A stretch of DNA of 64,000 nucleotides from Iphione sp. A-MEVVRFRX5 (lineage: Eukaryota): contig OZ320318.1 of assembly GCA_976226885.1 (NCBI GenBank), positions 73,222,001 through 73,286,000 on the forward strand. The letters run 5' to 3'. Positions 11,401 to 22,646 of this stretch are shown here, one piece after another. How positions within the stretch are numbered: position 1 is the stretch's first letter; every line of letters begins with the position of its first letter. The translations under genes were made by a program, and so were the position numbers. The notes beneath the pieces were generated by a model. The model was not told the DNA's origin. It was given only the letters and a program-made list of their open reading frames with translations, and made no database searches.

Positions 11401-12790
11401 CTCCATCTCATCTTGTGCCTCTTCTCCCTCTCTGTCTGCCCCATTTCTCCCGAAACACTATGTTGACCACCGTTGGTGGAATTTTTTTTCCTGTCCGCAG
11501 TCGTCTTACTTCTGCCTCTCGATATATTTACGGTACATGACAGAGAGCATGCATCATGAAGCTACCATTCTACATTGGAAAATGGTCGCAAAATCACCTA
11601 CAGTAGTCACGCGGTGGATGTGGCTTCTTTATTGGACGATGATAGCTTGTTGCTGGTAGTGCTTGCTCTGGGTATTGATCGAGTGGTTCTGATCAACAGC
11701 GGCGACGTCTACAATGTACCTTCTGCTATCAAAGTTGTAATACCCATTACCTGATCTTGTGCAACCAGCAGAGTTAAAACATGTTTCACGAGGTTGGCCG
11801 CAGACCGGTGTTTTCGTATGTTCTGTTCCATATAACCGCTTTCATAGGGTTTCCTGGCCTTGCTTTCAAGGCCGAATAGAGTCGGTTTCATTGGTTGCCG
11901 TCGTCGACACTATGCAACGCACTTGATCTGAAACAGTCACGTAAAGTTGATCAAATATAGAAGCATTATTTTCATCCGTAATGCATCTTCCTGTTCTCTC
12001 TGACTGGGTTTATCACCTGTTTTTATTGTTCAGCTTATTAGCAATTATTTTTCCATGAATGATCTCTCTCCTAGTCATTTTTGGCCCTTGTCTTCTACTT
12101 TTTCTCTATCTCTTTTTTTCTCTCCTGCTTCCCTCCCCCTGTTTCCCCTTCCCTCATCGTCCGGCTCTCCCTATCTGTGTCCATGTAGCGTTTTCCCTAT
12201 CCGATTTAGCATATGGACATCATAGTACTGTATAAATGCACAGGCCTCATGTCCTCCTTACACTCTTTCATTCCCACGCCCGCGTATTCCTTCATCCCAT
12301 ATTCATATACCTACCTCTCCAAGGCACAGTGGTTCGAGTTGCTAGTAGATGTAATCACCATCGACAGCCGTAACAGTCACAACGACACCTCCCTATTTAA
12401 CGACACTACCGCGTTATCGGCGCGCAGATGGTACTAGGGGAGAACCTGCTCTGACAATCACTTAACGTCTAGCAGCAAACTATTTCAGCCAATAAAACAA
12501 GGGGATCCCGACTTTGGAGGTCGCAGTCGCTCTCAAGGCTCACATGATCGACTCAGATTAGTCTGCAGCTCCTCGCGTGCGTTTCTCTAAATCTCCGCCA
12601 TGACAGATGAGGGCCAACCGCCACCCCGGAACACCCCGCTATTTTTATCCGCACCTCACCTCCCACTCGCCAGGTCGAATAATATTACCGTGAAGGAACA
12701 ACACTGAATAACAAAAGTCGTGTGGGCGATGTTCTATGTCACATTATTACGAATCTGTCATAGTTTTTTTCACCCTCCTCAAAACCCAAG

Positions 12791-12800
12791 ATAATGGCGG
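12791..12800 (+). promoter_or_regulatory. YY1-like motif at the presumed LINE 5' end (internal promoter candidate)
   Basis: ATAATGGCGG resembles the YY1 consensus AAnATGGCGG and lies ~220 nt upstream of the ORF1 ATG. This is a motif match only. Confidence 0.3.
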
Positions 12801-13013
12801 ACGGGTGAGGACGTATCACCGCTGAGGGGGAGCACAAAATCCGCTTCCATCGACGGAGTGCTGCACATATTGTCACGTATAACACTACAGATATATGGAG
12901 TATACGGTAAAGTATCCCTCTTTTACAAAATTATCGATAATCTAATCATTATTTCTGGTATTTTTGCATTTCTTTGTCAACGATTGATACTGGGCAAACC
13001 TAGCTGAGCGATA

Positions 13014-14927
13014 ATGAGTTTCCACTTTGATGATAGTGCACTGACTGAGGCTACTTTGAGTGCCGCGCAAGCTTATGTTGACCAAGTATTAGTTCTGAAA
13101 CCCACTCAGACGGTGCATTATACAGACCAAATCGAAAATAATACTGAATTACCTGCAAAAATTGTGACTTCAACGATGCTGACGACGGCCCCAACGGCTA
13201 CCATAACCACTGCGACAACACCAACCATGCAGACAGGCCCTTCCAAGACCGAAAACGCACTCCCACCTGTGACCTCGACAATAATGTTGACAGCCCCAAT
13301 GGTCTCTATTTCTACTGTATCTAAACCTGCCAGTCAGACTGTGACCTCCACGACAGAAAACACATTTCCACTGGATCTGACCGTAGTGGGTTTTACACCT
13401 GAAAACTTGTCTCAGAGAGATCAATTGACAAACCTCGCTCAAGGTATATCATGCACCCCTGTCATTGCCACCCCAGTTTCGGCCGTCAAAAGAAAAGAAA
13501 TCAGTCCGATCTTAGACACCCAAGACAGTAAAAAGGCCAGAGAATTTTCTCCTGAAGCCCAAGGTGAACCCATGACAGGTGTCCTAAGAGACGAGGTTAT
13601 TAGTATACTGAAGGAGGTAAGATGCTCGAGTCCCAGCAATGAGGCACCCTCATTAATGGTTCATGGTATGTTCATGGAATTAAAGAATGAGCTAGGTGCA
13701 TCCCTGCAGAATATGACAGATACTCTAAACTCTCACATAAACGAGAGCAAAAGAGTAAGCGATTCTTTCGTCTCTGGTATGGAGGCACAGGGTAAGCAAA
13801 TCGACGAGATGCTTGGTGCCATTCACATAAGCAAAGAGCGGCTGACAGAGCTAGAGATAGAAAATGCTGATCTAAAAGCAGAAATAAACGAACTCAGAGT
13901 TGGACGAGGTAATGACATGCTTAAATGCACTCAATTGAGTAGCGAAGTTAAAACCCTCAAAAACACCGTAGACAAATTGGATAGGGAAAGCAAACAGCTA
14001 AATCTATTAATATCGGGAATGGCAGAGGAGGGCGGGGAGACCCCCCAACGCCTTTGGGATAAGGTGTGTGATCTACTTGTCCGTGCTGACCCCTATTTCA
14101 TAGCAAGTAACATGGACTATTGTCATCGTCTGGGTTCATCGAATGGTAATCGTGTGCGGGACATTAAGGTACGATTTATCAAGCAGAGCACCCGTTCTAG
14201 GATTCTGTTCGGCAGGACTAACTTACGAAATGTTCGTGGGATTTGGATCAATGAAGATCTGTGTGAGTCTGACCGAATTGGGAGAGCAGAGCTTAGAAGC
14301 ATTTACCACCTTGCTAAGTCCTTAAACTACAATGCCAAACTGGACGGGGATAGGGTAGTAATTGAAGGGATCCCATATACAACCCGTACCTTGCATCGCC
14401 TACCACAGGGTATTAATCTTGAGCGTGCATCTGAGAAAAAATTGAATGACGGACTGGGTTTCTTTGGTAAGAATCATCCGTTCTCTAATATGTTCTCTTG
14501 CGAATTCGAACATCATGGAATAAAATATAGGTCTGCTGAACATGCCTATCAAGCCTCTAAGGCAATCGCTGCGGGTCTACCGACCCTAGCAGAAGAAATA
14601 ATGCAAGTGCGTGACCCCACCCAAATCCCTCGCAAAACAAAGGCCCTGAGAGACCACTCCCCGTGGACTGAAGAGGTTATGACGTCAACTATGACTGAGA
14701 TTCTCTACTCAAAGTTTAGTCAGTGCCAATCACTGAGAGAGAAACTACTGGCAACAGCCAATGACAAGCTGTACGAGGCCTCATTGGACGGCCACTGGGG
14801 CGTGGGTGTAACCCTACGAGGGTTAGAACACGCCTCAGGACATTTCCCAGGTAGGAACCAACTAGGACTGATTTTGCAACACATACGTGCTCGACTGAAA
14901 GACGGCAACATCTCTAGTCATCTCTAG
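13014..14927 (+). CDS. LINE ORF1 protein: Thr/Pro-rich N-terminus, coiled coil, L1/Tnp22-like RRM-CTD, C-terminal NADAR (YbiA-like) domain
   Basis: 637-aa intact ORF with an ATG start. Heptad-rich region at aa ~221-327. NLLISGMAE...CHRLG...IKVRF...IWINEDL is typical of L1-type ORF1 RRM. aa ~480-628 carry FSN, SAEHAYQASK, SKFSQ..LREKLLAT..KLYE, DGHWGVG and GRNQLGLIL, matching NADAR motifs. Confidence 0.92.
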   Translation: MSFHFDDSALTEATLSAAQAYVDQVLVLKPTQTVHYTDQIENNTELPAKIVTSTMLTTAPTATITTATTPTMQTGPSKTENALPPVTSTIMLTAPMVSISTVSKPASQTVTSTTENTFPLDLTVVGFTPENLSQRDQLTNLAQGISCTPVIATPVSAVKRKEISPILDTQDSKKAREFSPEAQGEPMTGVLRDEVISILKEVRCSSPSNEAPSLMVHGMFMELKNELGASLQNMTDTLNSHINESKRVSDSFVSGMEAQGKQIDEMLGAIHISKERLTELEIENADLKAEINELRVGRGNDMLKCTQLSSEVKTLKNTVDKLDRESKQLNLLISGMAEEGGETPQRLWDKVCDLLVRADPYFIASNMDYCHRLGSSNGNRVRDIKVRFIKQSTRSRILFGRTNLRNVRGIWINEDLCESDRIGRAELRSIYHLAKSLNYNAKLDGDRVVIEGIPYTTRTLHRLPQGINLERASEKKLNDGLGFFGKNHPFSNMFSCEFEHHGIKYRSAEHAYQASKAIAAGLPTLAEEIMQVRDPTQIPRKTKALRDHSPWTEEVMTSTMTEILYSKFSQCQSLREKLLATANDKLYEASLDGHWGVGVTLRGLEHASGHFPGRNQLGLILQHIRARLKDGNISSHL

Positions 14928-14939
14928 TCATTAGACAAT

Positions 14940-15632
14940 ATGCTTGACTTTGACGCGGACACGACCCCATTATCCCTGCACCTCTTTTGTGACTCCCACG
15001 GAAGAGGGTTGCAAGCTGATCTGCGCTCACAAGGCTACAGCTGCTATGTTCATTACTACCCAGGAGCGACAATTGCAAGGCTAGTATCTGAGATTCTAAA
15101 AACTGATTTCACTGATACTCCGTTATACATTGTTGTGCTCGCGGGTGGAAATAATTTTACATGTCTGCAAAAAAATGTCTTACTGTCTGACGGCTGTTAC
15201 TATCGTCAGGTGTCGATCCCCGAGAAGGACCCATATGTAATGACTGAGAACTTTATTGAAGAAGTTGAGAAGGCCCACGACACGTTATTTGACCATTTTC
15301 CCAGTACGTATATCATTTTCTCACAAGTGTTTGTGCCAAATGTGTCGAGATACAATGCTTACTTGTCTGGGGGAGTCGTTCCAGGGGCACCTACTCATCA
15401 TCTGCAGGCGAGTTTGAACAGGGCAGCGCATATGGTCAATCGGCAAGTCATCGCCTTCAATGCCCGCCATGGTCAGCCTACACCGTACACTGGAAACATC
15501 ATCCATGGGCGATGTAATGGACGTGATGTTACGAAAACACACAAGTTCTCTGACGGCTGTCACCTGAACACTCTGGGTCGCGCTGAATTCTCAACGAGGC
15601 TGGTATCGTTCATCGAGAAATTGCAGTTCTAA
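14940..15632 (+). CDS. SGNH/GDSL-type esterase ORF (copy 1)
   Basis: 230 aa with the SGNH blocks in order: FCDSH (catalytic Ser), YPGAT, LAGGNN, SDGCHL (Asp/His). Confidence 0.88.
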   Translation: MLDFDADTTPLSLHLFCDSHGRGLQADLRSQGYSCYVHYYPGATIARLVSEILKTDFTDTPLYIVVLAGGNNFTCLQKNVLLSDGCYYRQVSIPEKDPYVMTENFIEEVEKAHDTLFDHFPSTYIIFSQVFVPNVSRYNAYLSGGVVPGAPTHHLQASLNRAAHMVNRQVIAFNARHGQPTPYTGNIIHGRCNGRDVTKTHKFSDGCHLNTLGRAEFSTRLVSFIEKLQF

Positions 15633-16296
15633 CTACAATACTCGGTCTATAGACACTTATCGACTGCTGGTAATCTATATCTATTATGACTCCAATGGCC
15701 TATTTGCTGTACAGCGTACATTATGCATGACACAGAACAGCATGTACTGCGTGTTGATGAAATTAATTTTTTCCCATTATGTATTGTGACAAATACACAA
15801 TGTCTGCAAATTGTGCTATGCTGAATAGTTATCGAGGAAAACACATGTTCAACATTATGCGTCTCATGTATTCCTGGCACCAAGCAATGCATATGTTAGT
15901 TACTATCATTGCGATATTTCAGCTTGGTTATTGCGACTCGATGGATAGTCACAGATCTCCTCTTTGAGACAGGGCTGAAATTGAGTTTATCTAAAATACA
16001 AAAGTTATCCTACCAATGCCTCCTTTCTGAGGCGGTGCACATTTGTACAATTGAATGAGATCCTGTTCTCCTCTTTGCGACTGGATCATAACTTATGATT
16101 GAACTCCTCTATGAGTTCCTTAGTGTGCACTTATTAAAGACTTATAGAGTACGCATAACCTTGTATGATGTGTGTGTTTATTATTATCCACCCAAGTAGG
16201 GTATTCATGATCGTAATTTTTTTCGGTTAATATGTTACTACGAGCAATTTGTTATGTGCTCTCCCTCAGCGGACACATGGCCTATATGAAACTACT

Positions 16297-16494
16297 ATGT
16301 TTCCCATAACCTTATCCGATCTATACTTAATTATCTTTTCCTTGTTTGCCTACATTGCCACTGGCATTGTTGTACATGTGTTCTGTTGTTGCTTATCCAC
16401 GGGTGACCTTTATGCGGTAGAAAATTGGAACATTATTAACCAAATACCACAGTGTTTACATAACCTTGAAAATATATCTAGATCGAATAGGTAG
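16297..16494 (+). CDS. Putative 65-aa single-pass membrane peptide overlapping the ORF2 5' end (copy 1)
   Basis: ATG at 16297. Hydrophobic stretch LYLIIFSLFAYIATGIVVHVF followed by CCC. May be a chance ORF in T-rich spacer DNA. Confidence 0.3.
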   Translation: MFPITLSDLYLIIFSLFAYIATGIVVHVFCCCLSTGDLYAVENWNIINQIPQCLHNLENISRSNR

Positions 16495-17937
16495 CAAACA
16501 ATCACATAAGGATCTGAATCTTCTAATAGTCCATCTCAATATTCGAAGTATCCGTAACAAAAAACCATGCGTTGAACTTTTAGTAAATAACAATGTACCA
16601 GATATACTAATCATTACAGAATCATGGTTAGATCATACAATACCCACCCATATAATGGATTTACCAGACTACTTAACTGTCAGACTGGACCGGGAACTTG
16701 GCATTGGCGGGGGGATCCTGATGTATTATAAATCGAATATACTCCTGGATAGTGAGCTATACAAAGATCTGAATCAATCCAATAGAAATATCGAGATGCA
16801 GTGCTCCAAAATTACGGTCCCCTCTGGTGACCCAATATCACTGATTGCACTCTATCGTCCACCCAAAGGGTGCATAAAAAAATTCTTTGAAATACTGGAT
16901 GCATTATTGGAAAAATTAATAACGCTAGGTAAGAGAATTGTAATCATGGGTGACTTTAACATTAATTACTTTGATAAAACTAGCCTTGCCTTCACTATGT
17001 TGGATGATTTATGTAAAAATTTTGACCTAAAGCAGACAGTTAAAGGGGCAACACGCACCACCTTACAGACAAATACATGCATTGATCTATGTATTACCTC
17101 ATTCATAAAATCTACGACATGGATTATCAAATCTTTCATTAGTGACCATCATGCCATTGCTTGTAAATTTGCCTGTCAAATAGAGAAACCAGAAACAAAT
17201 CCTTTTGAATATCGTTCGTGGACATGTCAACATGATAGAAAATTCGAAACAAGTACTTTCACTGCCGATTGGTCTTATTTTTTTAGTCAGAAGGATCCAA
17301 ACTGCTTGGTAAGTTATCTAGAAAATACATTATCAGGACAATTAATCAGATCTCTCCAGTGAAGATTAGTCGTGCTCTACACAGACAGCAAAAATGGGTG
17401 AGCCCAGATACTATGAGGCTAATTCAACAAAAGAACTCTTGTTATAAAAAGGCCCACTCACTAAAGTCACCTAGTCTATTTAAAATAGCAAAAGATCTAA
17501 ATGCTCGATGCAGAAAGCGCATAGCTTATGACAAGGCAAACTCCGTGGAAACGAATCTAAAGTCTAATCAGAGGAATCCAAAAAGGTACTGGTCAATTGT
17601 GAAAAATTACCTAGGCCTTGGCAAATCCCGAACTATCCCATGCTTGAAGAGAGATGATATGGTCTTAGAGAATTCAGAGTCAGCTAGTGCATTTAATGGT
17701 CATTTCGCAAATGTTGGTAAATCACCGTCCGATGTTGACAGTGAGTTAGTTTATGTTAACGTAAAACAAATTATCACTAAATTCCGGCTGAGTAAGGTGG
17801 ATGAAACAACAGTTAAAAAAATTATCATGGAACAGAAGGACTCAAAACCTAGTGGCTTAGACGGGTGTCAAACAAAAATTCTTAAAAAATGCTTGGTATC
17901 ACTGTTACCAAAATTCACCTATGTGATAAACAACTAG
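16466..17937 (+). pseudogene. Truncated, frameshifted first copy of ORF2 (endonuclease plus linker, no RT core)
   Basis: Translation matches the start of 19549..22389. It has A4 instead of A5 at 17322-17325 (frameshift) and ends at a TAG (17935-17937) created by the duplication junction. Confidence 0.9.
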
Positions 17938-18022
17938 GAACCAACTAGGACTGATTTTGCAACACATACGTGCTCGACTGAAAGACGGCAACATCTCTAG
18001 TCATCTCTAGTCATTAGACAAT

Positions 18023-18715
18023 ATGCTTGACTTTGACGCGGACACGACCCCATTATCCCTGCACCTCTTTTGTGACTCCCACGGAAGAGGGTTGCAAGCT
18101 GATCTGCGCTCACAAGGCTACAGCTGCTATGTTCATTACTACCCAGGAGCGACAATTGCAAGGCTAGTATCTGAGATTCTAAAAACTGATTTCACTGATA
18201 CTCCGTTATACATTGTTGTGCTCGCGGGTGGAAATAATTTTACATGTCTGCAAAAAAATGTCTTACTGTCTGACGGCTGTTACTATCGTCAGGTGTCGAT
18301 CCCCGAGAAGGACCCATATGTAATGACTGAGAACTTTATTGAAGAAGTTGAGAAGGCCCACGACACGTTATTTGACCATTTTCCCAGTACGTATATCATT
18401 TTCTCACAAGTGTTTGTGCCAAATGTGTCGAGATACAATGCTTACTTGTCTGGGGGAGTCGTTCCAGGGGCACCTACTCATCATCTGCAGGCGAGTTTGA
18501 ACAGGGCAGCGCATATGGTCAATCGGCAAGTCATCGCCTTCAATGCCCGCCATGGTCAGCCTACACCGTACACTGGAAACATCATCCATGGGCGATGTAA
18601 TGGACGTGATGTTACGAAAACACACAAGTTCTCTGACGGCTGTCACCTGAACACTCTGGGTCGCGCTGAATTCTCAACGAGGCTGGTATCGTTCATCGAG
18701 AAATTGCAGTTCTAA
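18023..18715 (+). CDS. SGNH/GDSL-type esterase ORF (copy 2, identical protein)
   Basis: Translation is identical to 14940..15632. Confidence 0.88.
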   Translation: MLDFDADTTPLSLHLFCDSHGRGLQADLRSQGYSCYVHYYPGATIARLVSEILKTDFTDTPLYIVVLAGGNNFTCLQKNVLLSDGCYYRQVSIPEKDPYVMTENFIEEVEKAHDTLFDHFPSTYIIFSQVFVPNVSRYNAYLSGGVVPGAPTHHLQASLNRAAHMVNRQVIAFNARHGQPTPYTGNIIHGRCNGRDVTKTHKFSDGCHLNTLGRAEFSTRLVSFIEKLQF

Positions 18716-19379
18716 CTACAATACTCGGTCTATAGACACTTATCGACTGCTGGTAATCTATATCTATTATGACTCCAATGGCCTATTTGCTGTACAGCGT
18801 ACATTATGCATGACACAGAACAGCATGTACTGCGTGTTGATGAAATTAATTTTTTCCCATTATGTATTGTGACAAATACACAATGTCTGCAAATTGTGCT
18901 ATGCTGAATAGTTATCGAGGAAAACACATGTTCAACATTATGCGTCTCATGTATTCCTGGCACCAAGCAATGCATATGTTAGTTACTATCATTGCGATAT
19001 TTCAGCTTGGTTATTGCGACTCGATGGATAGTCACAGATCTCCTCTTTGAGACAGGGCTGAAATTGAGTTTATCTAAAATACAAAAGTTATCCTACCAAT
19101 GCCTCCTTTCTGAGGCGGTGCACATTTGTACAATTGAATGAGATCCTGTTCTCCTCTTTGCGACTGGATCATAACTTATGATTGAACTCCTCTATGAGTT
19201 CCTTAGTGTGCACTTATTAAAGACTTATAGAGTACGCATAACCTTGTATGATGTGTGTGTTTATTATTATCCACCCAAGTAGGGTATTCATGATCGTAAT
19301 TTTTTTCGGTTAATATGTTACTACGAGCAATTTGTTATGTGCTCTCCCTCAGCGGACACATGGCCTATATGAAACTACT

Positions 19380-19577
19380 ATGTTTCCCATAACCTTATCC
19401 GATCTATACTTAATTATCTTTTCCTTGTTTGCCTACATTGCCACTGGCATTGTTGTACATGTGTTCTGTTGTTGCTTATCCACGGGTGACCTTTATGCGG
19501 TAGAAAATTGGAACATTATTAACCAAATACCACAGTGTTTACATAACCTTGAAAATATATCTAGATCGAATAGGTAG
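19380..19577 (+). CDS. Putative small membrane peptide (copy 2)
   Basis: Identical to 16297..16494 and overlaps the intact ORF2 start. Confidence 0.3.
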   Translation: MFPITLSDLYLIIFSLFAYIATGIVVHVFCCCLSTGDLYAVENWNIINQIPQCLHNLENISRSNR

Positions 19578-22389
19578 CAAACAATCACATAAGGATCTGA
19601 ATCTTCTAATAGTCCATCTCAATATTCGAAGTATCCGTAACAAAAAACCATGCGTTGAACTTTTAGTAAATAACAATGTACCAGATATACTAATCATTAC
19701 AGAATCATGGTTAGATCATACAATACCCACCCATATAATGGATTTACCAGACTACTTAACTGTCAGACTGGACCGGGAACTTGGCATTGGCGGGGGGATC
19801 CTGATGTATTATAAATCGAATATACTCCTGGATAGTGAGCTATACAAAGATCTGAATCAATCCAATAGAAATATCGAGATGCAGTGCTCCAAAATTACGG
19901 TCCCCTCTGGTGACCCAATATCACTGATTGCACTCTATCGTCCACCCAAAGGGTGCATAAAAAAATTCTTTGAAATACTGGATGCATTATTGGAAAAATT
20001 AATAACGCTAGGTAAGAGAATTGTAATCATGGGTGACTTTAACATTAATTACTTTGATAAAACTAGCCTTGCCTTCACTATGTTGGATGATTTATGTAAA
20101 AATTTTGACCTAAAGCAGACAGTTAAAGGGGCAACACGCACCACCTTACAGACAAATACATGCATTGATCTATGTATTACCTCATTCATAAAATCTACGA
20201 CATGGATTATCAAATCTTTCATTAGTGACCATCATGCCATTGCTTGTAAATTTGCCTGTCAAATAGAGAAACCAGAAACAAATCCTTTTGAATATCGTTC
20301 GTGGACATGTCAACATGATAGAAAATTCGAAACAAGTACTTTCACTGCCGATTGGTCTTATTTTTTTAGTCAGAAGGATCCAAACTGCTTGGTAAGTTAT
20401 CTAGAAAAATACATTATCAGGACAATTAATCAGATCTCTCCAGTGAAGATTAGTCGTGCTCTACACAGACAGCAAAAATGGGTGAGCCCAGATACTATGA
20501 GGCTAATTCAACAAAAGAACTCTTGTTATAAAAAGGCCCACTCACTAAAGTCACCTAGTCTATTTAAAATAGCAAAAGATCTAAATGCTCGATGCAGAAA
20601 GCGCATAGCTTATGACAAGGCAAACTCCGTGGAAACGAATCTAAAGTCTAATCAGAGGAATCCAAAAAGGTACTGGTCAATTGTGAAAAATTACCTAGGC
20701 CTTGGCAAATCCCGAACTATCCCATGCTTGAAGAGAGATGATATGGTCTTAGAGAATTCAGAGTCAGCTAGTGCATTTAATGGTCATTTCGCAAATGTTG
20801 GTAAATCACCGTCCGATGTTGACAGTGAGTTAGTTTATGTTAACGTAAAACAAATTATCACTAAATTCCGGCTGAGTAAGGTGGATGAAACAACAGTTAA
20901 AAAAATTATCATGGAACAGAAGGACTCAAAACCTAGTGGCTTAGACGGGTGTCAAACAAAAATTCTTAAAAAATGCTTGGTATCACTGTTACCAAAATTC
21001 ACCTATGTGATAAACAACAGTATTGAACTGGGAATTGTTCCTCGAAGTTGGAAAGCAGCATGCATTACGCCACTATACAAAGGTAAGGGTAGTAGGTTTG
21101 AAGCCAATAGTTACCGTCCAATTAGTATACTTCCTATGTGTAGCAAAATCTTAGAGAGAGTGGTCTACAATCAATGCATGAGTCACATTGAGTCTAACCA
21201 GATCCTTTCCTCATGTCAATTCGGATTCAGAAAAAATTTATCGACTATTGACGCCTTAAACAATGTGTTATCTTACGTACACAATGGTATCAATGATGGT
21301 CTACTTGTTGGTGCTGTTTTCATTGACTATCAAAAGGCGTTCGATAGTATTAACCACCAGATTCTGTTAAAAAAATTAGGAAGGATGGGCTTTGAAATAA
21401 ATTGGTTTAAATCTTATCTATCAGAAAGGAAAATAAGAACTCGCATAGGACAGTCAATGTCGGATCCTCTACCACTTCTAACCGGTGTGCCCCAGGGAAG
21501 TATTTTGGGCCCGTTGCTCTTCAGCCTTTTTATAAACGACAGTGTTGGTTGTCTGATGGATACAAAATGCACTATGTATGCCGACGATACGGTAATTCTT
21601 TTTAAAAGCAAAGAACTCTCTGAGATAACACATGCTCTAAACCAAGACCTCAATAGACTAAATGCCTGGTGTACTGCAAACGGAATTAGGATTAATTACA
21701 AGAAAACAGAAGCAATGTTGTTCTGCAGCTCCAAAAATCGTCTGAAGGAATACCAACTTTCGGTTAAAATTGATGCATCTGATATCTGTCAGGTCCCAAC
21801 ATTTAAATACTTGGGCTTCATCCTTGACTCCCACCTAAGTCTAAAATATGATCTAGAAAACAAAATAAAGAAATCTTATACTCTAATTAACCTAATTCGC
21901 CTAGGAAAACAAATAGATAAAAACACTGCTTTGTGTATCCTTAAATCTTATTTCTTACCTGCAATCGAGTACGGTCTAGGATCAATACATTGTTACAAGT
22001 CAACACTGTTCAAGAAATTATCAAGACAACAGGAGAAGGCAATACGATTAGCTTCTGGTAGTTGCGGTGAGGATTACAAAACTTTATGTAGTAAATTAAA
22101 GATTTTGCCTCTAGAGTATAGAAGTATGTACTTCTCTCTTTGTATCTGTCACAAAGAGCTGTTCCCAATATATAACAAAATTAAAGAGACAACTAGATTT
22201 AGGCAAGCACGTCTACCGTCCGTCATTGTGAGGAGATCGTCTTATCAACTAGATCCCATGTTCAATGCCATACGTTTCTGGAATACTCTACCAGACAATT
22301 TGAAGGTCCATGATAAAAAGGTGTTTAAAAGGAATCTAAAGCAGGAATTATTTGATTGTATGCTGAAAGAAAACTGGAGGATTTTTTAA
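19549..22389 (+). CDS. LINE ORF2: APE-type endonuclease plus reverse transcriptase (intact, non-AUG start)
   Basis: 946-codon frame. EN motifs HLNIRS, ITESW, LYRPP, GDFN, IDL, SDH. RT motifs YRPISILP, QFGFR, IDYQKAFD, GVPQGSILGPLLF, YADD (21577-21588), KYLG. The frame opens at 19504 and the track start is TTG. Confidence 0.96.
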   Translation: MKIYLDRIGSKQSHKDLNLLIVHLNIRSIRNKKPCVELLVNNNVPDILIITESWLDHTIPTHIMDLPDYLTVRLDRELGIGGGILMYYKSNILLDSELYKDLNQSNRNIEMQCSKITVPSGDPISLIALYRPPKGCIKKFFEILDALLEKLITLGKRIVIMGDFNINYFDKTSLAFTMLDDLCKNFDLKQTVKGATRTTLQTNTCIDLCITSFIKSTTWIIKSFISDHHAIACKFACQIEKPETNPFEYRSWTCQHDRKFETSTFTADWSYFFSQKDPNCLVSYLEKYIIRTINQISPVKISRALHRQQKWVSPDTMRLIQQKNSCYKKAHSLKSPSLFKIAKDLNARCRKRIAYDKANSVETNLKSNQRNPKRYWSIVKNYLGLGKSRTIPCLKRDDMVLENSESASAFNGHFANVGKSPSDVDSELVYVNVKQIITKFRLSKVDETTVKKIIMEQKDSKPSGLDGCQTKILKKCLVSLLPKFTYVINNSIELGIVPRSWKAACITPLYKGKGSRFEANSYRPISILPMCSKILERVVYNQCMSHIESNQILSSCQFGFRKNLSTIDALNNVLSYVHNGINDGLLVGAVFIDYQKAFDSINHQILLKKLGRMGFEINWFKSYLSERKIRTRIGQSMSDPLPLLTGVPQGSILGPLLFSLFINDSVGCLMDTKCTMYADDTVILFKSKELSEITHALNQDLNRLNAWCTANGIRINYKKTEAMLFCSSKNRLKEYQLSVKIDASDICQVPTFKYLGFILDSHLSLKYDLENKIKKSYTLINLIRLGKQIDKNTALCILKSYFLPAIEYGLGSIHCYKSTLFKKLSRQQEKAIRLASGSCGEDYKTLCSKLKILPLEYRSMYFSLCICHKELFPIYNKIKETTRFRQARLPSVIVRRSSYQLDPMFNAIRFWNTLPDNLKVHDKKVFKRNLKQELFDCMLKENWRIF

Positions 22390-22593
22390 GCTGATTCAAT
22401 TGGTAAAACACTCTATCAATAGTCCCTGTAACTGAACAATCAAATGTTAAATCGCAACCTGCTGTACATAGTGTAAATACACTGTAAATAGAGTCACACT
22501 GTATGTACAGAGTTAAACTGAAAAATTTGCCATTGTAAATATTGCTTGTATATAGTAGTTGTTAAGAATAGAGCTGCATGTATCTGTAAAGTA

Positions 22594-22646
22594 ACTGGCA
22601 CCTTTGGATTGCCAGTAGAAATAAAAGTTCAAAAAAAAAAAAAAAA
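22594..22646 (+). terminator. LINE 3' end: stem-loop, poly(A) signal, A16 tail
   Basis: ACTGGCA (22594-22600) pairs with TGCCAGT (22610-22616). AATAAA at 22620-22625 and A16 at 22631-22646. Confidence 0.82.

Follow-up and report, generated by a model that had tools for sequence, protein, structure and literature searches.

The window analyzed here is a 64,000-nt stretch of the genome of Iphione sp. A-MEVVRFRX5 (GCA_976226885.1, OZ320318.1, forward strand, positions 73,222,001–73,286,000), and all coordinates given below are counted from its first letter. We located in it a polyadenylated LINE with three ORFs, which code for an ORF1 protein ending in a NADAR domain, an SGNH esterase, and an ORF2 with AP endonuclease (APE) and reverse transcriptase (RT) domains. 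The canonical element is ∼6.8 kb long. The copy in the window has the following features.

12790–22646, forward strand: whole LINE copy, 9.86 kb, with an internal 3.08-kb duplication inside
13014–14927, forward strand: ORF1, 637 aa, with a Thr/Ser/Pro-rich variable N terminus, helical region, RRM, CTD and NADAR
14004–14423, forward strand: L1-type RRM and CTD (aa 331–470), a structural match to human ORF1p
14469–14900, forward strand: NADAR of the YbiA subfamily (aa 486–629), from Pfam and fold
14852–17934, forward strand: unit 1 of a tandem duplication, 3,083 bp (unit 2 at 17935–21018)
14940–15632, forward strand: free-standing SGNH-fold esterase ORF, 230 aa, 12 nt past the ORF1 stop
16466–17937, forward strand: truncated, frameshifted first copy of the ORF2 5′ half
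19145–19167 and 19184–19201, forward strand: pair of conserved hairpins, with loops of the CUCU type, between the esterase ORF and ORF2
19549–22389, forward strand: ORF2, AP endonuclease and reverse transcriptase, frame open for 946+ codons
22620–22646, forward strand: AATAAA signal and A16 tail, with the poly(A) ending at 22646

Comparing the 5′ ends of two copies, we find that homology to the nearest copy begins near 12794. Six further full-length copies (44–84% identity) have the same three-ORF layout and carry a poly(A) of 15–19 nt in the same place. We could not detect a target-site duplication in the form of a repeat of ≥8 bp at the inferred ends of the window copy. The two duplication units differ by a single A in a homopolymer (17326/20409), and the duplication is absent from the six other full-length copies; it may be an assembly artifact. 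The ATG found just ahead of the endonuclease domain of ORF2 in relatives is missing here. The window copy looks damaged and, because of the internal duplication and the missing ORF2 start, is probably no longer mobile.

The preliminary description of this locus, made from the sequence without database searches, had proposed that a NADAR domain at 14451–14897 is fused to the ORF1 protein of a LINE. The downstream 230-aa ORF, the ORF2 with APE and RT domains, and the AATAAA signal with its A16 tail bear this out and identify the NADAR-bearing protein as a LINE ORF1. A host gene, instead of a transposon, as the source of this ORF was considered and rejected.

ORF1 begins with a long, low-complexity N terminus, followed by a coiled-coil-like helical region. 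The AlphaFold2 model (pLDDT 94.6, pTM 0.86) places after it a fold that matches the human LINE-1 ORF1p trimer (PDB ID 2YKO; Foldseek E = 8.5e-8 over 151 columns) as well as 2W7A (TMt 0.72) and 2LDY. Pfam profiles run on ORF1 returned no match for this RRM-CTD portion, Transposase_22 included. The modeled protein has the architecture of an L1-type (type II) ORF1p, with the coiled coil taken from the predicted helix alone. The pTM value suggests that the NADAR is packed rigidly against the RRM-CTD.

A complete YbiA-subfamily NADAR (14469–14900) forms the C terminus of this L1-type ORF1p. PF08719 aligns to aa 486–629 over profile positions 9–163 of 163 with 88.7 bits (E = 6.7e-25; the curated gathering cut-off is 35.1), and TIGR02464, which models riboflavin-intermediate N-glycosidases, also passes its cut-off (82.2 bits; cut-off 73.7). 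This is the feature first seen at 14451–14897: the translation gives the peptide quoted then, and the motif-by-motif match to YbiA stands. phmmer finds Escherichia coli YbiA (2B3W, E = 7e-8) and the NADAR of Phytophthora (8BAU, E = 2e-7), and a Foldseek search with the AlphaFold2 model recovers the same two structures (8BAU, E = 2.3e-9, TM 0.70; 2B3W, TM 0.72), in agreement with the proposed kinship to YbiA. Two other identities were considered for the domain and rejected, namely a chance motif match and a DarT1-NADAR antitoxin of the BC4488 subfamily; against the latter, the last-strand residue is Glu-588 and not Asp, and the neighbors are LINE ORFs.

The roles of the aligned active-site residues in ADP-ribosyl-guanine hydrolysis have been described (PMC11543638). 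Their counterparts in ORF1 are found at the following positions.

14538–14540, forward strand: Glu-509 codon, corresponding to catalytic Glu-43 of the Phytophthora nicotianae NADAR
14559–14561, forward strand: Lys-516 codon, corresponding to phosphate-binding Lys-50
14637–14642, forward strand: Thr-542–Lys-543, replacing the Gly-78–Arg-79 pyrophosphate/adenine contact of 8BAU
14775–14777, forward strand: Glu-588 codon, corresponding to Glu-125, the glutamate of the last strand by which the YbiA subfamily is defined

Glu-588 sits in the motif LYEAS; members of the BC4488 subfamily have Asp here, and phage NADARs have His. Asp-592, Trp-595 and Trp-551 align with Asp-130, Trp-133 and Trp-89 of 8BAU. 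The replacement of the usual GR motif by TK, also noted earlier, maps to Gly-78–Arg-79; it retains a basic charge and concerns contact residues rather than family-defining ones, and foreign relatives mostly have K-R-L-G at this site. The adenine-stacking Tyr-84 of 8BAU falls into a gap of the ORF1 NADAR alignment and has no counterpart.

The esterase ORF, of which a second, identical copy lies at 18023–18715, had no match in Pfam or in a PDB sequence search, and the fold search alone was informative: its AlphaFold2 model (pLDDT 80.2) matched GDSL/SGNH esterases (E = 3e-7, Foldseek). The esterase motifs DSHG, G..N and DGCH are invariant. ORF2 matches RVT_1 (E = 1.8e-37) together with Exo_endo_phos and Exo_endo_phos_2 in Pfam. 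Searched against the PDB, its RT matches those of L1 and R2 about equally, and the only named ORF2 relative is annotated as 'transposon BS'. The C terminus of ORF2 carries a WNxLP...FK motif, which we take to be CR1-like, and inspection by eye revealed no C-terminal CCHC in the tail. The element looks more like the CR1/Jockey group than like L1, and given the CR1-like tail, the lack of a CCHC and the 'transposon BS' relative it may lie outside Tx1.

The ORF1-NADAR fusion is old and has been inherited within a large LINE lineage; it is found in Iphione sp. and in other eukaryotic assemblies. The Iphione sp. genome contains at least 69 ORF1-NADAR matches, mostly open and 37–84% identical. Among foreign protein clusters, obtained by exhaustive search, >140 of the best 150 span both the RRM-CTD and the NADAR; a word-indexed search with ORF1 returned only 1–2 matches because of the low-complexity N terminus. 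In two foreign elements we found APE and RT domains downstream of ORF1-NADAR. The one named protein among twenty clusters looked up is a Haliotis rufescens protein with seven NADAR domains, which is not a LINE. For the foreign relatives, the ESM Atlas gives at most a hint of Annelida.

The NADAR and the RNA-binding core are under equally strong purifying selection. NADAR dN/dS values are 0.03–0.17, as low as for the RRM-CTD, and are only rough for the many pairs in which dS is saturated, among them the window copy and its nearest copy (dS ∼1.6); at unsaturated dS they are 0.07–0.11, equal to the RRM-CTD. Whether sister copies keep the domain had been raised in the preliminary description: it is present in them and is not decaying neutrally (dN/dS 0.03–0.17).

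The catalytic triad has a more uneven history. Glu-509 is invariant in the 19 nearest copies and Lys-516 is found in 17 of them, but the Lys-516 equivalent is replaced in many deeper lineages. EKE or ERE is kept in 46/50 foreign relatives, in all 11 outgroup rows of our tree and in 26/34 rows of the window copy's clade, yet in only 30 of 60 copies of the Iphione sp. genome. Three clades have exchanged Lys for Leu/Ile/Met/Val, or the first Glu for Asp/Asn/Leu/Ile/Val, and a tree of 59 copies shows at least 6–9 losses of Lys or of the first Glu. In these triad-altered clades NADAR dN/dS is still 0.04–0.17 (0.10 at dS 0.24 for an EVE pair, 0.04 for an EIE pair). Because constraint continued after these losses, hydrolysis is not a universal requirement of the fusion, and a non-catalytic role would suffice in the altered clades.

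The best explanation overall, to which we give about an even chance, is that ORF1p bears an active N-glycosidase that would remove ADP-ribose from bases of the element's nucleic acids. In the clade of the window copy the NADAR is most likely active as an N-glycosidase, because it retains the Glu-Lys-Glu triad and most of the residues that contact ADP-ribose; such an enzyme would cut ADP-ribose off nucleobases, with N2 of guanine as the expected target and cytosine as a possible one. YbiA-type and animal NADARs take ADP-ribose off cytidine too (PMC12945103). As a trimeric RNA chaperone, ORF1p would bring the domain to element RNA, cDNA or target DNA, and adducts standing in the way of reverse transcription or integration would be removed there. 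That these adducts are made by a host defense enzyme is speculation. A search of the Iphione sp. genome for a host ADP-ribosyltransferase partner with the Pfam profiles Enterotoxin_a and ADPrib_exo_Tox returned no match, and the controls gave no signal either, so that this negative carries no information. The model put forward in the preliminary description, an ADP-ribose eraser serving counter-defense, is plausible from homology; the wider proposition, that an animal LINE lineage carries its own nucleic-acid de-ADP-ribosylase against host base ADP-ribosylation of retroelement RNA, cDNA or target DNA, we consider unlikely.

A rival reading is that the NADAR is mainly a non-catalytic module of ORF1p, serving RNP structure or binding nucleic acid, ADP-ribose or NAD-derived ligands, with the intact triad of the window copy's clade as an ancestral leftover; we regard this as possible but doubtful. 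The repeated losses of Lys or the first Glu point this way, as do the purifying selection on triad-less NADARs and the rigid packing on the RRM-CTD that the pTM suggests. However, the triad persists in nearly all foreign relatives, in every outgroup and in most of the window copy's clade, and Asp-592, Trp-595 and Trp-551 are kept as well; such deep retention is not expected of a dead site.

We consider it quite unlikely that the NADAR is active on another substrate and serves processing of the LINE transcript RNA rather than base de-ADP-ribosylation. Candidate substrates would be a small-molecule N-glycoside or, at RNA ends, 5′ ADP-ribose or NAD caps or the ADP-ribose 1″-2″ cyclic phosphate that arises in RNA repair or splicing. 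The substrate could indeed be something else, because the activity originally ascribed to YbiA was that of an N-glycosidase for riboflavin intermediates, and TIGR02464, named for this activity on riboflavin intermediates, scores above its cut-off in ORF1. RNA-processing roles have been proposed for retrotransposon NADARs (PMC12477816), and the Caenorhabditis elegans NADAR protein SNA-3 works in trans-splicing. Yet all NADARs assayed to date, from several subfamilies and with YbiA-type members and a sponge enzyme included, hydrolyze base-linked ADP-ribose, and activity on RNA ends is unreported in the NADAR literature covered.

That the fusion plays no role, being a neutral passenger, an exon captured from the host, or an artifact of annotation or assembly, has a negligible probability and is effectively refuted: the odd internal duplication, itself a possible assembly artifact, speaks for it, but the ORF is continuous in 60+ copies, dN/dS is ∼0.1, the same fusion with APE-RT downstream occurs in other assemblies, and seven collinear full-length elements make a gene-model or assembly chimera very unlikely.

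The preliminary description could not judge whether an ORF1-NADAR fusion is new, and its claim to novelty is weakened by a 2025 paper that reports YbiA-type NADARs in the ORF1 proteins of several LINE families from Crassostrea gigas, labeled 'Tx1' in Repbase (PMC12477816, Genome Biol). The fusion is mentioned there briefly, in two sentences that do not go into structure, selection, distribution or the anatomy of the elements. Like the Iphione element, the oyster LINEs hold a YbiA-family NADAR within ORF1, in a lophotrochozoan-type genome. The Iphione element differs by its ORF2 of 946 aa with a CR1-like tail and no C-terminal CCHC. Ectocarpus Gypsy LTR elements carry a YbiA-type NADAR as well, at the N terminus of Pol and with best matches in bacteria (PMC12477816), so that element class, host protein (Pol and not ORF1) and probably origin differ.

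Compared with the L1 ORF1p of human and other mammals (2YKO, 2W7A, 2LDY), Iphione ORF1 shares the long helix followed by RRM and CTD, and its position ahead of the other ORFs in a polyadenylated LINE of the APE-RT kind, but has an extra 150-aa NADAR after the CTD, a long low-complexity N terminus and a third ORF in the element. YbiA (2B3W) and the P. nicotianae NADAR in complex with ADP-ribose (8BAU) have the same fold, triad, last-strand Glu and Asp/Trp pyrophosphate contacts. Both are stand-alone proteins, whereas the Iphione domain is joined to an RNA chaperone, has Thr-Lys in place of Gly-78–Arg-79 and lacks Tyr-84. LINEs of the CR1/L2 type whose ORF1 includes an esterase domain (type IV ORF1p, as in zebrafish L2) were reportedly described by Kapitonov and Jurka in 2003. 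They have in common with the Iphione element an SGNH/GDSL-fold esterase and a CR1-like ORF2 C terminus. In the Iphione element, however, a cistron of its own, 230 aa long and placed between ORF1 and ORF2, encodes the esterase, and ORF1 is of the L1 type and bears a NADAR.

The DarT1 antitoxin and orphan phage NADARs of the AdfB/gp30.3 type, which neutralize DarT1, are likewise found on mobile or parasitic elements. By analogy, the Iphione NADAR could erase guanine ADP-ribosylation of the nucleic acid of its own element. The bacterial and phage proteins have a last-strand Asp (BC4488) or His (phage) and a known ADP-ribosyltransferase opponent, whereas the Iphione domain has Glu, an animal host and no known cognate transferase. 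To our knowledge, the demonstrations that DNA and RNA bases are ADP-ribosylated and that NADARs undo this date from 2023 onward and come mostly from bacteria and phages. A strongly selected NADAR on a LINE RNA chaperone hints that nucleic-acid ADP-ribosylation is relevant to the control of animal retroelements. If the counter-defense model is true, the fusion would be the eukaryotic transposon equivalent of the phage NADARs that defeat DarT1, and the triad-less lineages would mark escape from, or loss of, conflict with host enzymes. The Iphione sp. genome lends itself to testing this relevance to retroelement control, with a triad that looks active in one clade and naturally 'dead' versions in its sisters.

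The NADAR and the separate SGNH esterase cistron extend the short list of accessory enzymatic modules in the LINE ORF1 region (RRM, CCHC, PHD, esterase). The two spacer hairpins, duplicated at 16062–16118, show no covariation because their stems are invariant across six lineages.

The peptide at 14451-14897 (+), which the preliminary description had assigned to a NADAR domain, was reproduced by translation at these coordinates and lies within ORF1, a 637-aa open reading frame (13014-14927, +) of the LINE copy in the window. Pfam NADAR (PF08719) matches ORF1 aa 486-629 over nearly the entire profile (88.7 bits, E 6.7e-25; gathering score 35.1), the YbiA-type N-glycosidase domain model TIGR02464 (NCBIfam) scores above its cut-off, and phmmer against PDB sequences returns E. 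coli YbiA (2B3W) and the Phytophthora nicotianae NADAR (8BAU). The match is far beyond chance. We built an AlphaFold model of aa 311-637 from a 60-sequence alignment (mean pLDDT 94.6, pTM 0.86) and compared it with the PDB using Foldseek. The C-terminal half resembles 8BAU (the NADAR in complex with ADP-ribose; E 2.3e-9, TM 0.70) and 2B3W (TM 0.72), and the N-terminal half resembles the human LINE-1 ORF1p trimer (2YKO, E 8.5e-8, 151 columns), with further matches to an RRM (2W7A) and an RRM-CTD (2LDY). Because the model splits cleanly into ORF1p-like and NADAR-like halves, ORF1 is an L1-type ORF1p (helix, RRM, CTD) with an appended NADAR; the RRM-CTD fold is common to human LINE-1 ORF1p, whereas the NADAR is extra in the window ORF1. 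The Pfam L1 ORF1 model found no match in this protein. Within 13014-13700, the ORF1 N-terminus is hypervariable and Thr/Ser/Pro-rich, and is followed at aa ~159-180 by a conserved KRK.ISPI...SP segment resembling a nuclear-localisation signal with Ser-Pro phosphosites.

We located the putative active site by alignment with 8BAU, taking residue roles from PMC11543638 and verifying all codons. The catalytic triad comprises:

E509, ORF1 (+), equivalent to E43 of 8BAU (alignment, codon verified)
K516, ORF1 (+), equivalent to K50 of 8BAU (alignment, codon verified)
E588, ORF1 (+), equivalent to E125 of 8BAU (alignment, codon verified)

E125 is the last-strand glutamate that defines the YbiA subfamily. 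The Asp and Trp contacts are likewise common to both proteins (D592, W595 and W551 correspond to D130, W133 and W89). Two features of 8BAU differ here: its G78-R79 contact is T542-K543 in ORF1, bearing out the earlier remark that the usual GR is replaced by TK, and its adenine-stacking Y84 lies opposite a gap in the alignment. From this mapping, the triad and most ADP-ribose contacts are intact, and the adenine/pyrophosphate loop is modified.

An ORF1 search of the 1.18-Gb genome gave 5,857 first-look candidates, from which 69 matches were scored (37-84% identity, nearly all open and extending to aa ~630). Among the 19 closest copies, conservation of the NADAR equals that of the RRM-CTD, Glu-509 and Glu-588 are invariant, and Lys-516 is found in 17. 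Restricted to pairs whose dS is unsaturated, Nei-Gojobori estimates of dN/dS range over 0.07-0.11 (NADAR) and 0.02-0.11 (RRM-CTD); the window NADAR and its nearest relative differ by dN 0.058 at dS about 1.6. Since dN/dS is low, the NADAR is clearly under purifying selection, and it is present and likewise constrained in sister copies.

The element is organized as follows:

ORF1, + strand, stop at 14927
14940-15632, + strand, 230-aa ORF beginning 12 nt past the ORF1 stop, repeated at 18023-18715
Spacer of ~0.8 kb between the 230-aa ORF and ORF2
ORF2, + strand, APE and RT (RVT_1, E 1.8e-37; also Exo_endo_phos and Exo_endo_phos_2)
3' UTR of ~240 nt, AATAAA at 22620, A16 ending at 22646

Six other full-length copies in the same genome, with proteins 44-84% identical to those of the window, have the same three-ORF order and a poly(A) of 15-19 nt. 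The 230-aa ORF (AF2 pLDDT 80.2) resembles GDSL esterases in Foldseek (about E 3e-7; 102 matches below 1e-3) with invariant DSHG, G..N and DGCH motifs; this free-standing ORF has an SGNH esterase fold. Its 12-nt distance from the ORF1 stop suggests termination-reinitiation. The esterase-ORF2 spacer contains a pair of short hairpins, at 19145-19167 and 19184-19201, whose pyrimidine loops are of the CUCU type; their duplicates occupy 16062-16084 and 16101-16118. Not one stem nucleotide differs across six lineages whose proteins are only 45-84% identical, and this invariance precludes any covariation; the hairpins may serve in ORF2 translation (IRES-like) or in RNP recognition.

The window copy carries a tandem repeat of 14852-17934 as 17935-21018, a 3,083-bp unit stretching between the C-terminus of the NADAR and the middle of ORF2. 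The units differ solely by one A in a homopolymer (17326/20409), which frameshifts the first partial ORF2. The six other full-length copies all lack this duplication, which is either a very recent event or an assembly artefact. ORF2 (19549 region) lacks an ATG upstream of the endonuclease domain; in five of those six copies an ATG stands only a few codons from this position. Because of the duplication with its frameshift and the missing ATG, the window copy is probably not autonomous; ORF1 and the esterase ORF are still intact.

ORF2 (946 aa) ends in 'WNxLP...FK', which we take to be a motif of CR1-like elements; by eye, it shows no C-terminal CCHC motif, and just one of its homologues carries a name, 'RNA-directed DNA polymerase from transposon BS'. 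PDB L1 and R2 RTs match it about equally. On these features and the Exo_endo_phos_2 hit, we tentatively favour a polyadenylated member of the CR1/Jockey superfamily over L1/Tx1.

Removal of ADP-ribose from guanine and cytidine, on DNA as well as RNA, has been shown for NADARs of several subfamilies, YbiA-type enzymes and one from a sponge among them (PMC11543638, PMC12945103). The identity, fold, intact triad, age and selection of the ORF1 domain and its fusion to an L1-type RNA chaperone are established, and because several subfamilies act in this way, its most likely activity would be hydrolysis of base-linked ADP-ribose: ORF1p would hold nucleic acid, and the fused NADAR would cut base-linked ADP-ribose from that same molecule. 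A role against an ADP-ribosyltransferase of the host is speculative; genome searches for two toxin-type transferase families of Pfam came back empty, with controls equally silent. The question raised, whether a retrotransposon carries a nucleic-acid de-ADP-ribosylase, is biochemical in nature.

A mainly structural or binding role is one rival, and repeated triad loss in sister lineages speaks for it. Among 60 copies of this genome, 26 have Glu-Lys-Glu and four Glu-Arg-Glu; in the remainder the Lys position is taken by Leu, Ile, Met, Val, His or Gln, or the first Glu is replaced by Asp, Asn, Leu, Ile or Val, and the last-strand Glu (or Asp) is nearly always retained. In a tree of 59 genome copies and 11 foreign outgroups, the window lies inside a well-supported 34-row clade in which 26 rows keep the triad; it is lost in three other clades, and at least 6-9 state changes are needed. 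Triad-less NADARs still show low dN/dS (Glu-Val-Glu pair, 0.10 at dS 0.24; Glu-Ile-Glu pair, 0.04). All 11 outgroups and 46 of 50 foreign relatives have Glu-Lys-Glu or Glu-Arg-Glu, and on these counts the triad is ancestral and kept in the window copy's clade; a catalytically doubtful NADAR is tolerated yet constrained in the others. Among copies elsewhere in the genome (L043-L067), there are whole ORF1-NADAR clades, with open frames and low dN/dS, in which a hydrophobic residue replaces the catalytic Lys or the first Glu is gone, and several carry a Lys or Arg two residues beyond the Lys position. A different substrate (RNA-end ADP-ribose, NAD derivatives or small N-glycosides) is a possibility.

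An exhaustive profile-free protein search with ORF1 aa 311-637 returned 6,920 proteins with E <= 1e-3, of which 66 reach E <= 1e-30; among the best 150, almost every one covers both RRM-CTD and NADAR. One foreign element (ORF1 26% identical) has APE and RT genes downstream. Another (L068), in five identical copies, is bicistronic, with a 438-aa ORF1-NADAR, a 964-aa APE-RT and a 3' end of AATAAA and poly(A); it has no esterase ORF. Look-alike clusters in the ESM Atlas are from Eukaryota, the commonest known phylum being Annelida. The preliminary description is confirmed in seeing a NADAR on a LINE ORF1 and partly supported in its interpretation. Its case for novelty is weakened: the one relevant paper that full-text searching turned up, PMC12477816 (Genome Biol 2025), deals with YbiA-type NADARs of a Gypsy lineage in Ectocarpus and already records, in a brief remark, such domains in ORF1 of several Repbase LINE families of Crassostrea gigas. 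The window LINE and its relatives are further, well-characterised members of a barely described, already noted kind. The top-scoring match of the search is not a LINE: in Haliotis rufescens XP_048255699 (4,240 aa) Pfam sees NADAR alone, seven domains in tandem, and this protein could be the source of the LINE domain or a domesticated array.
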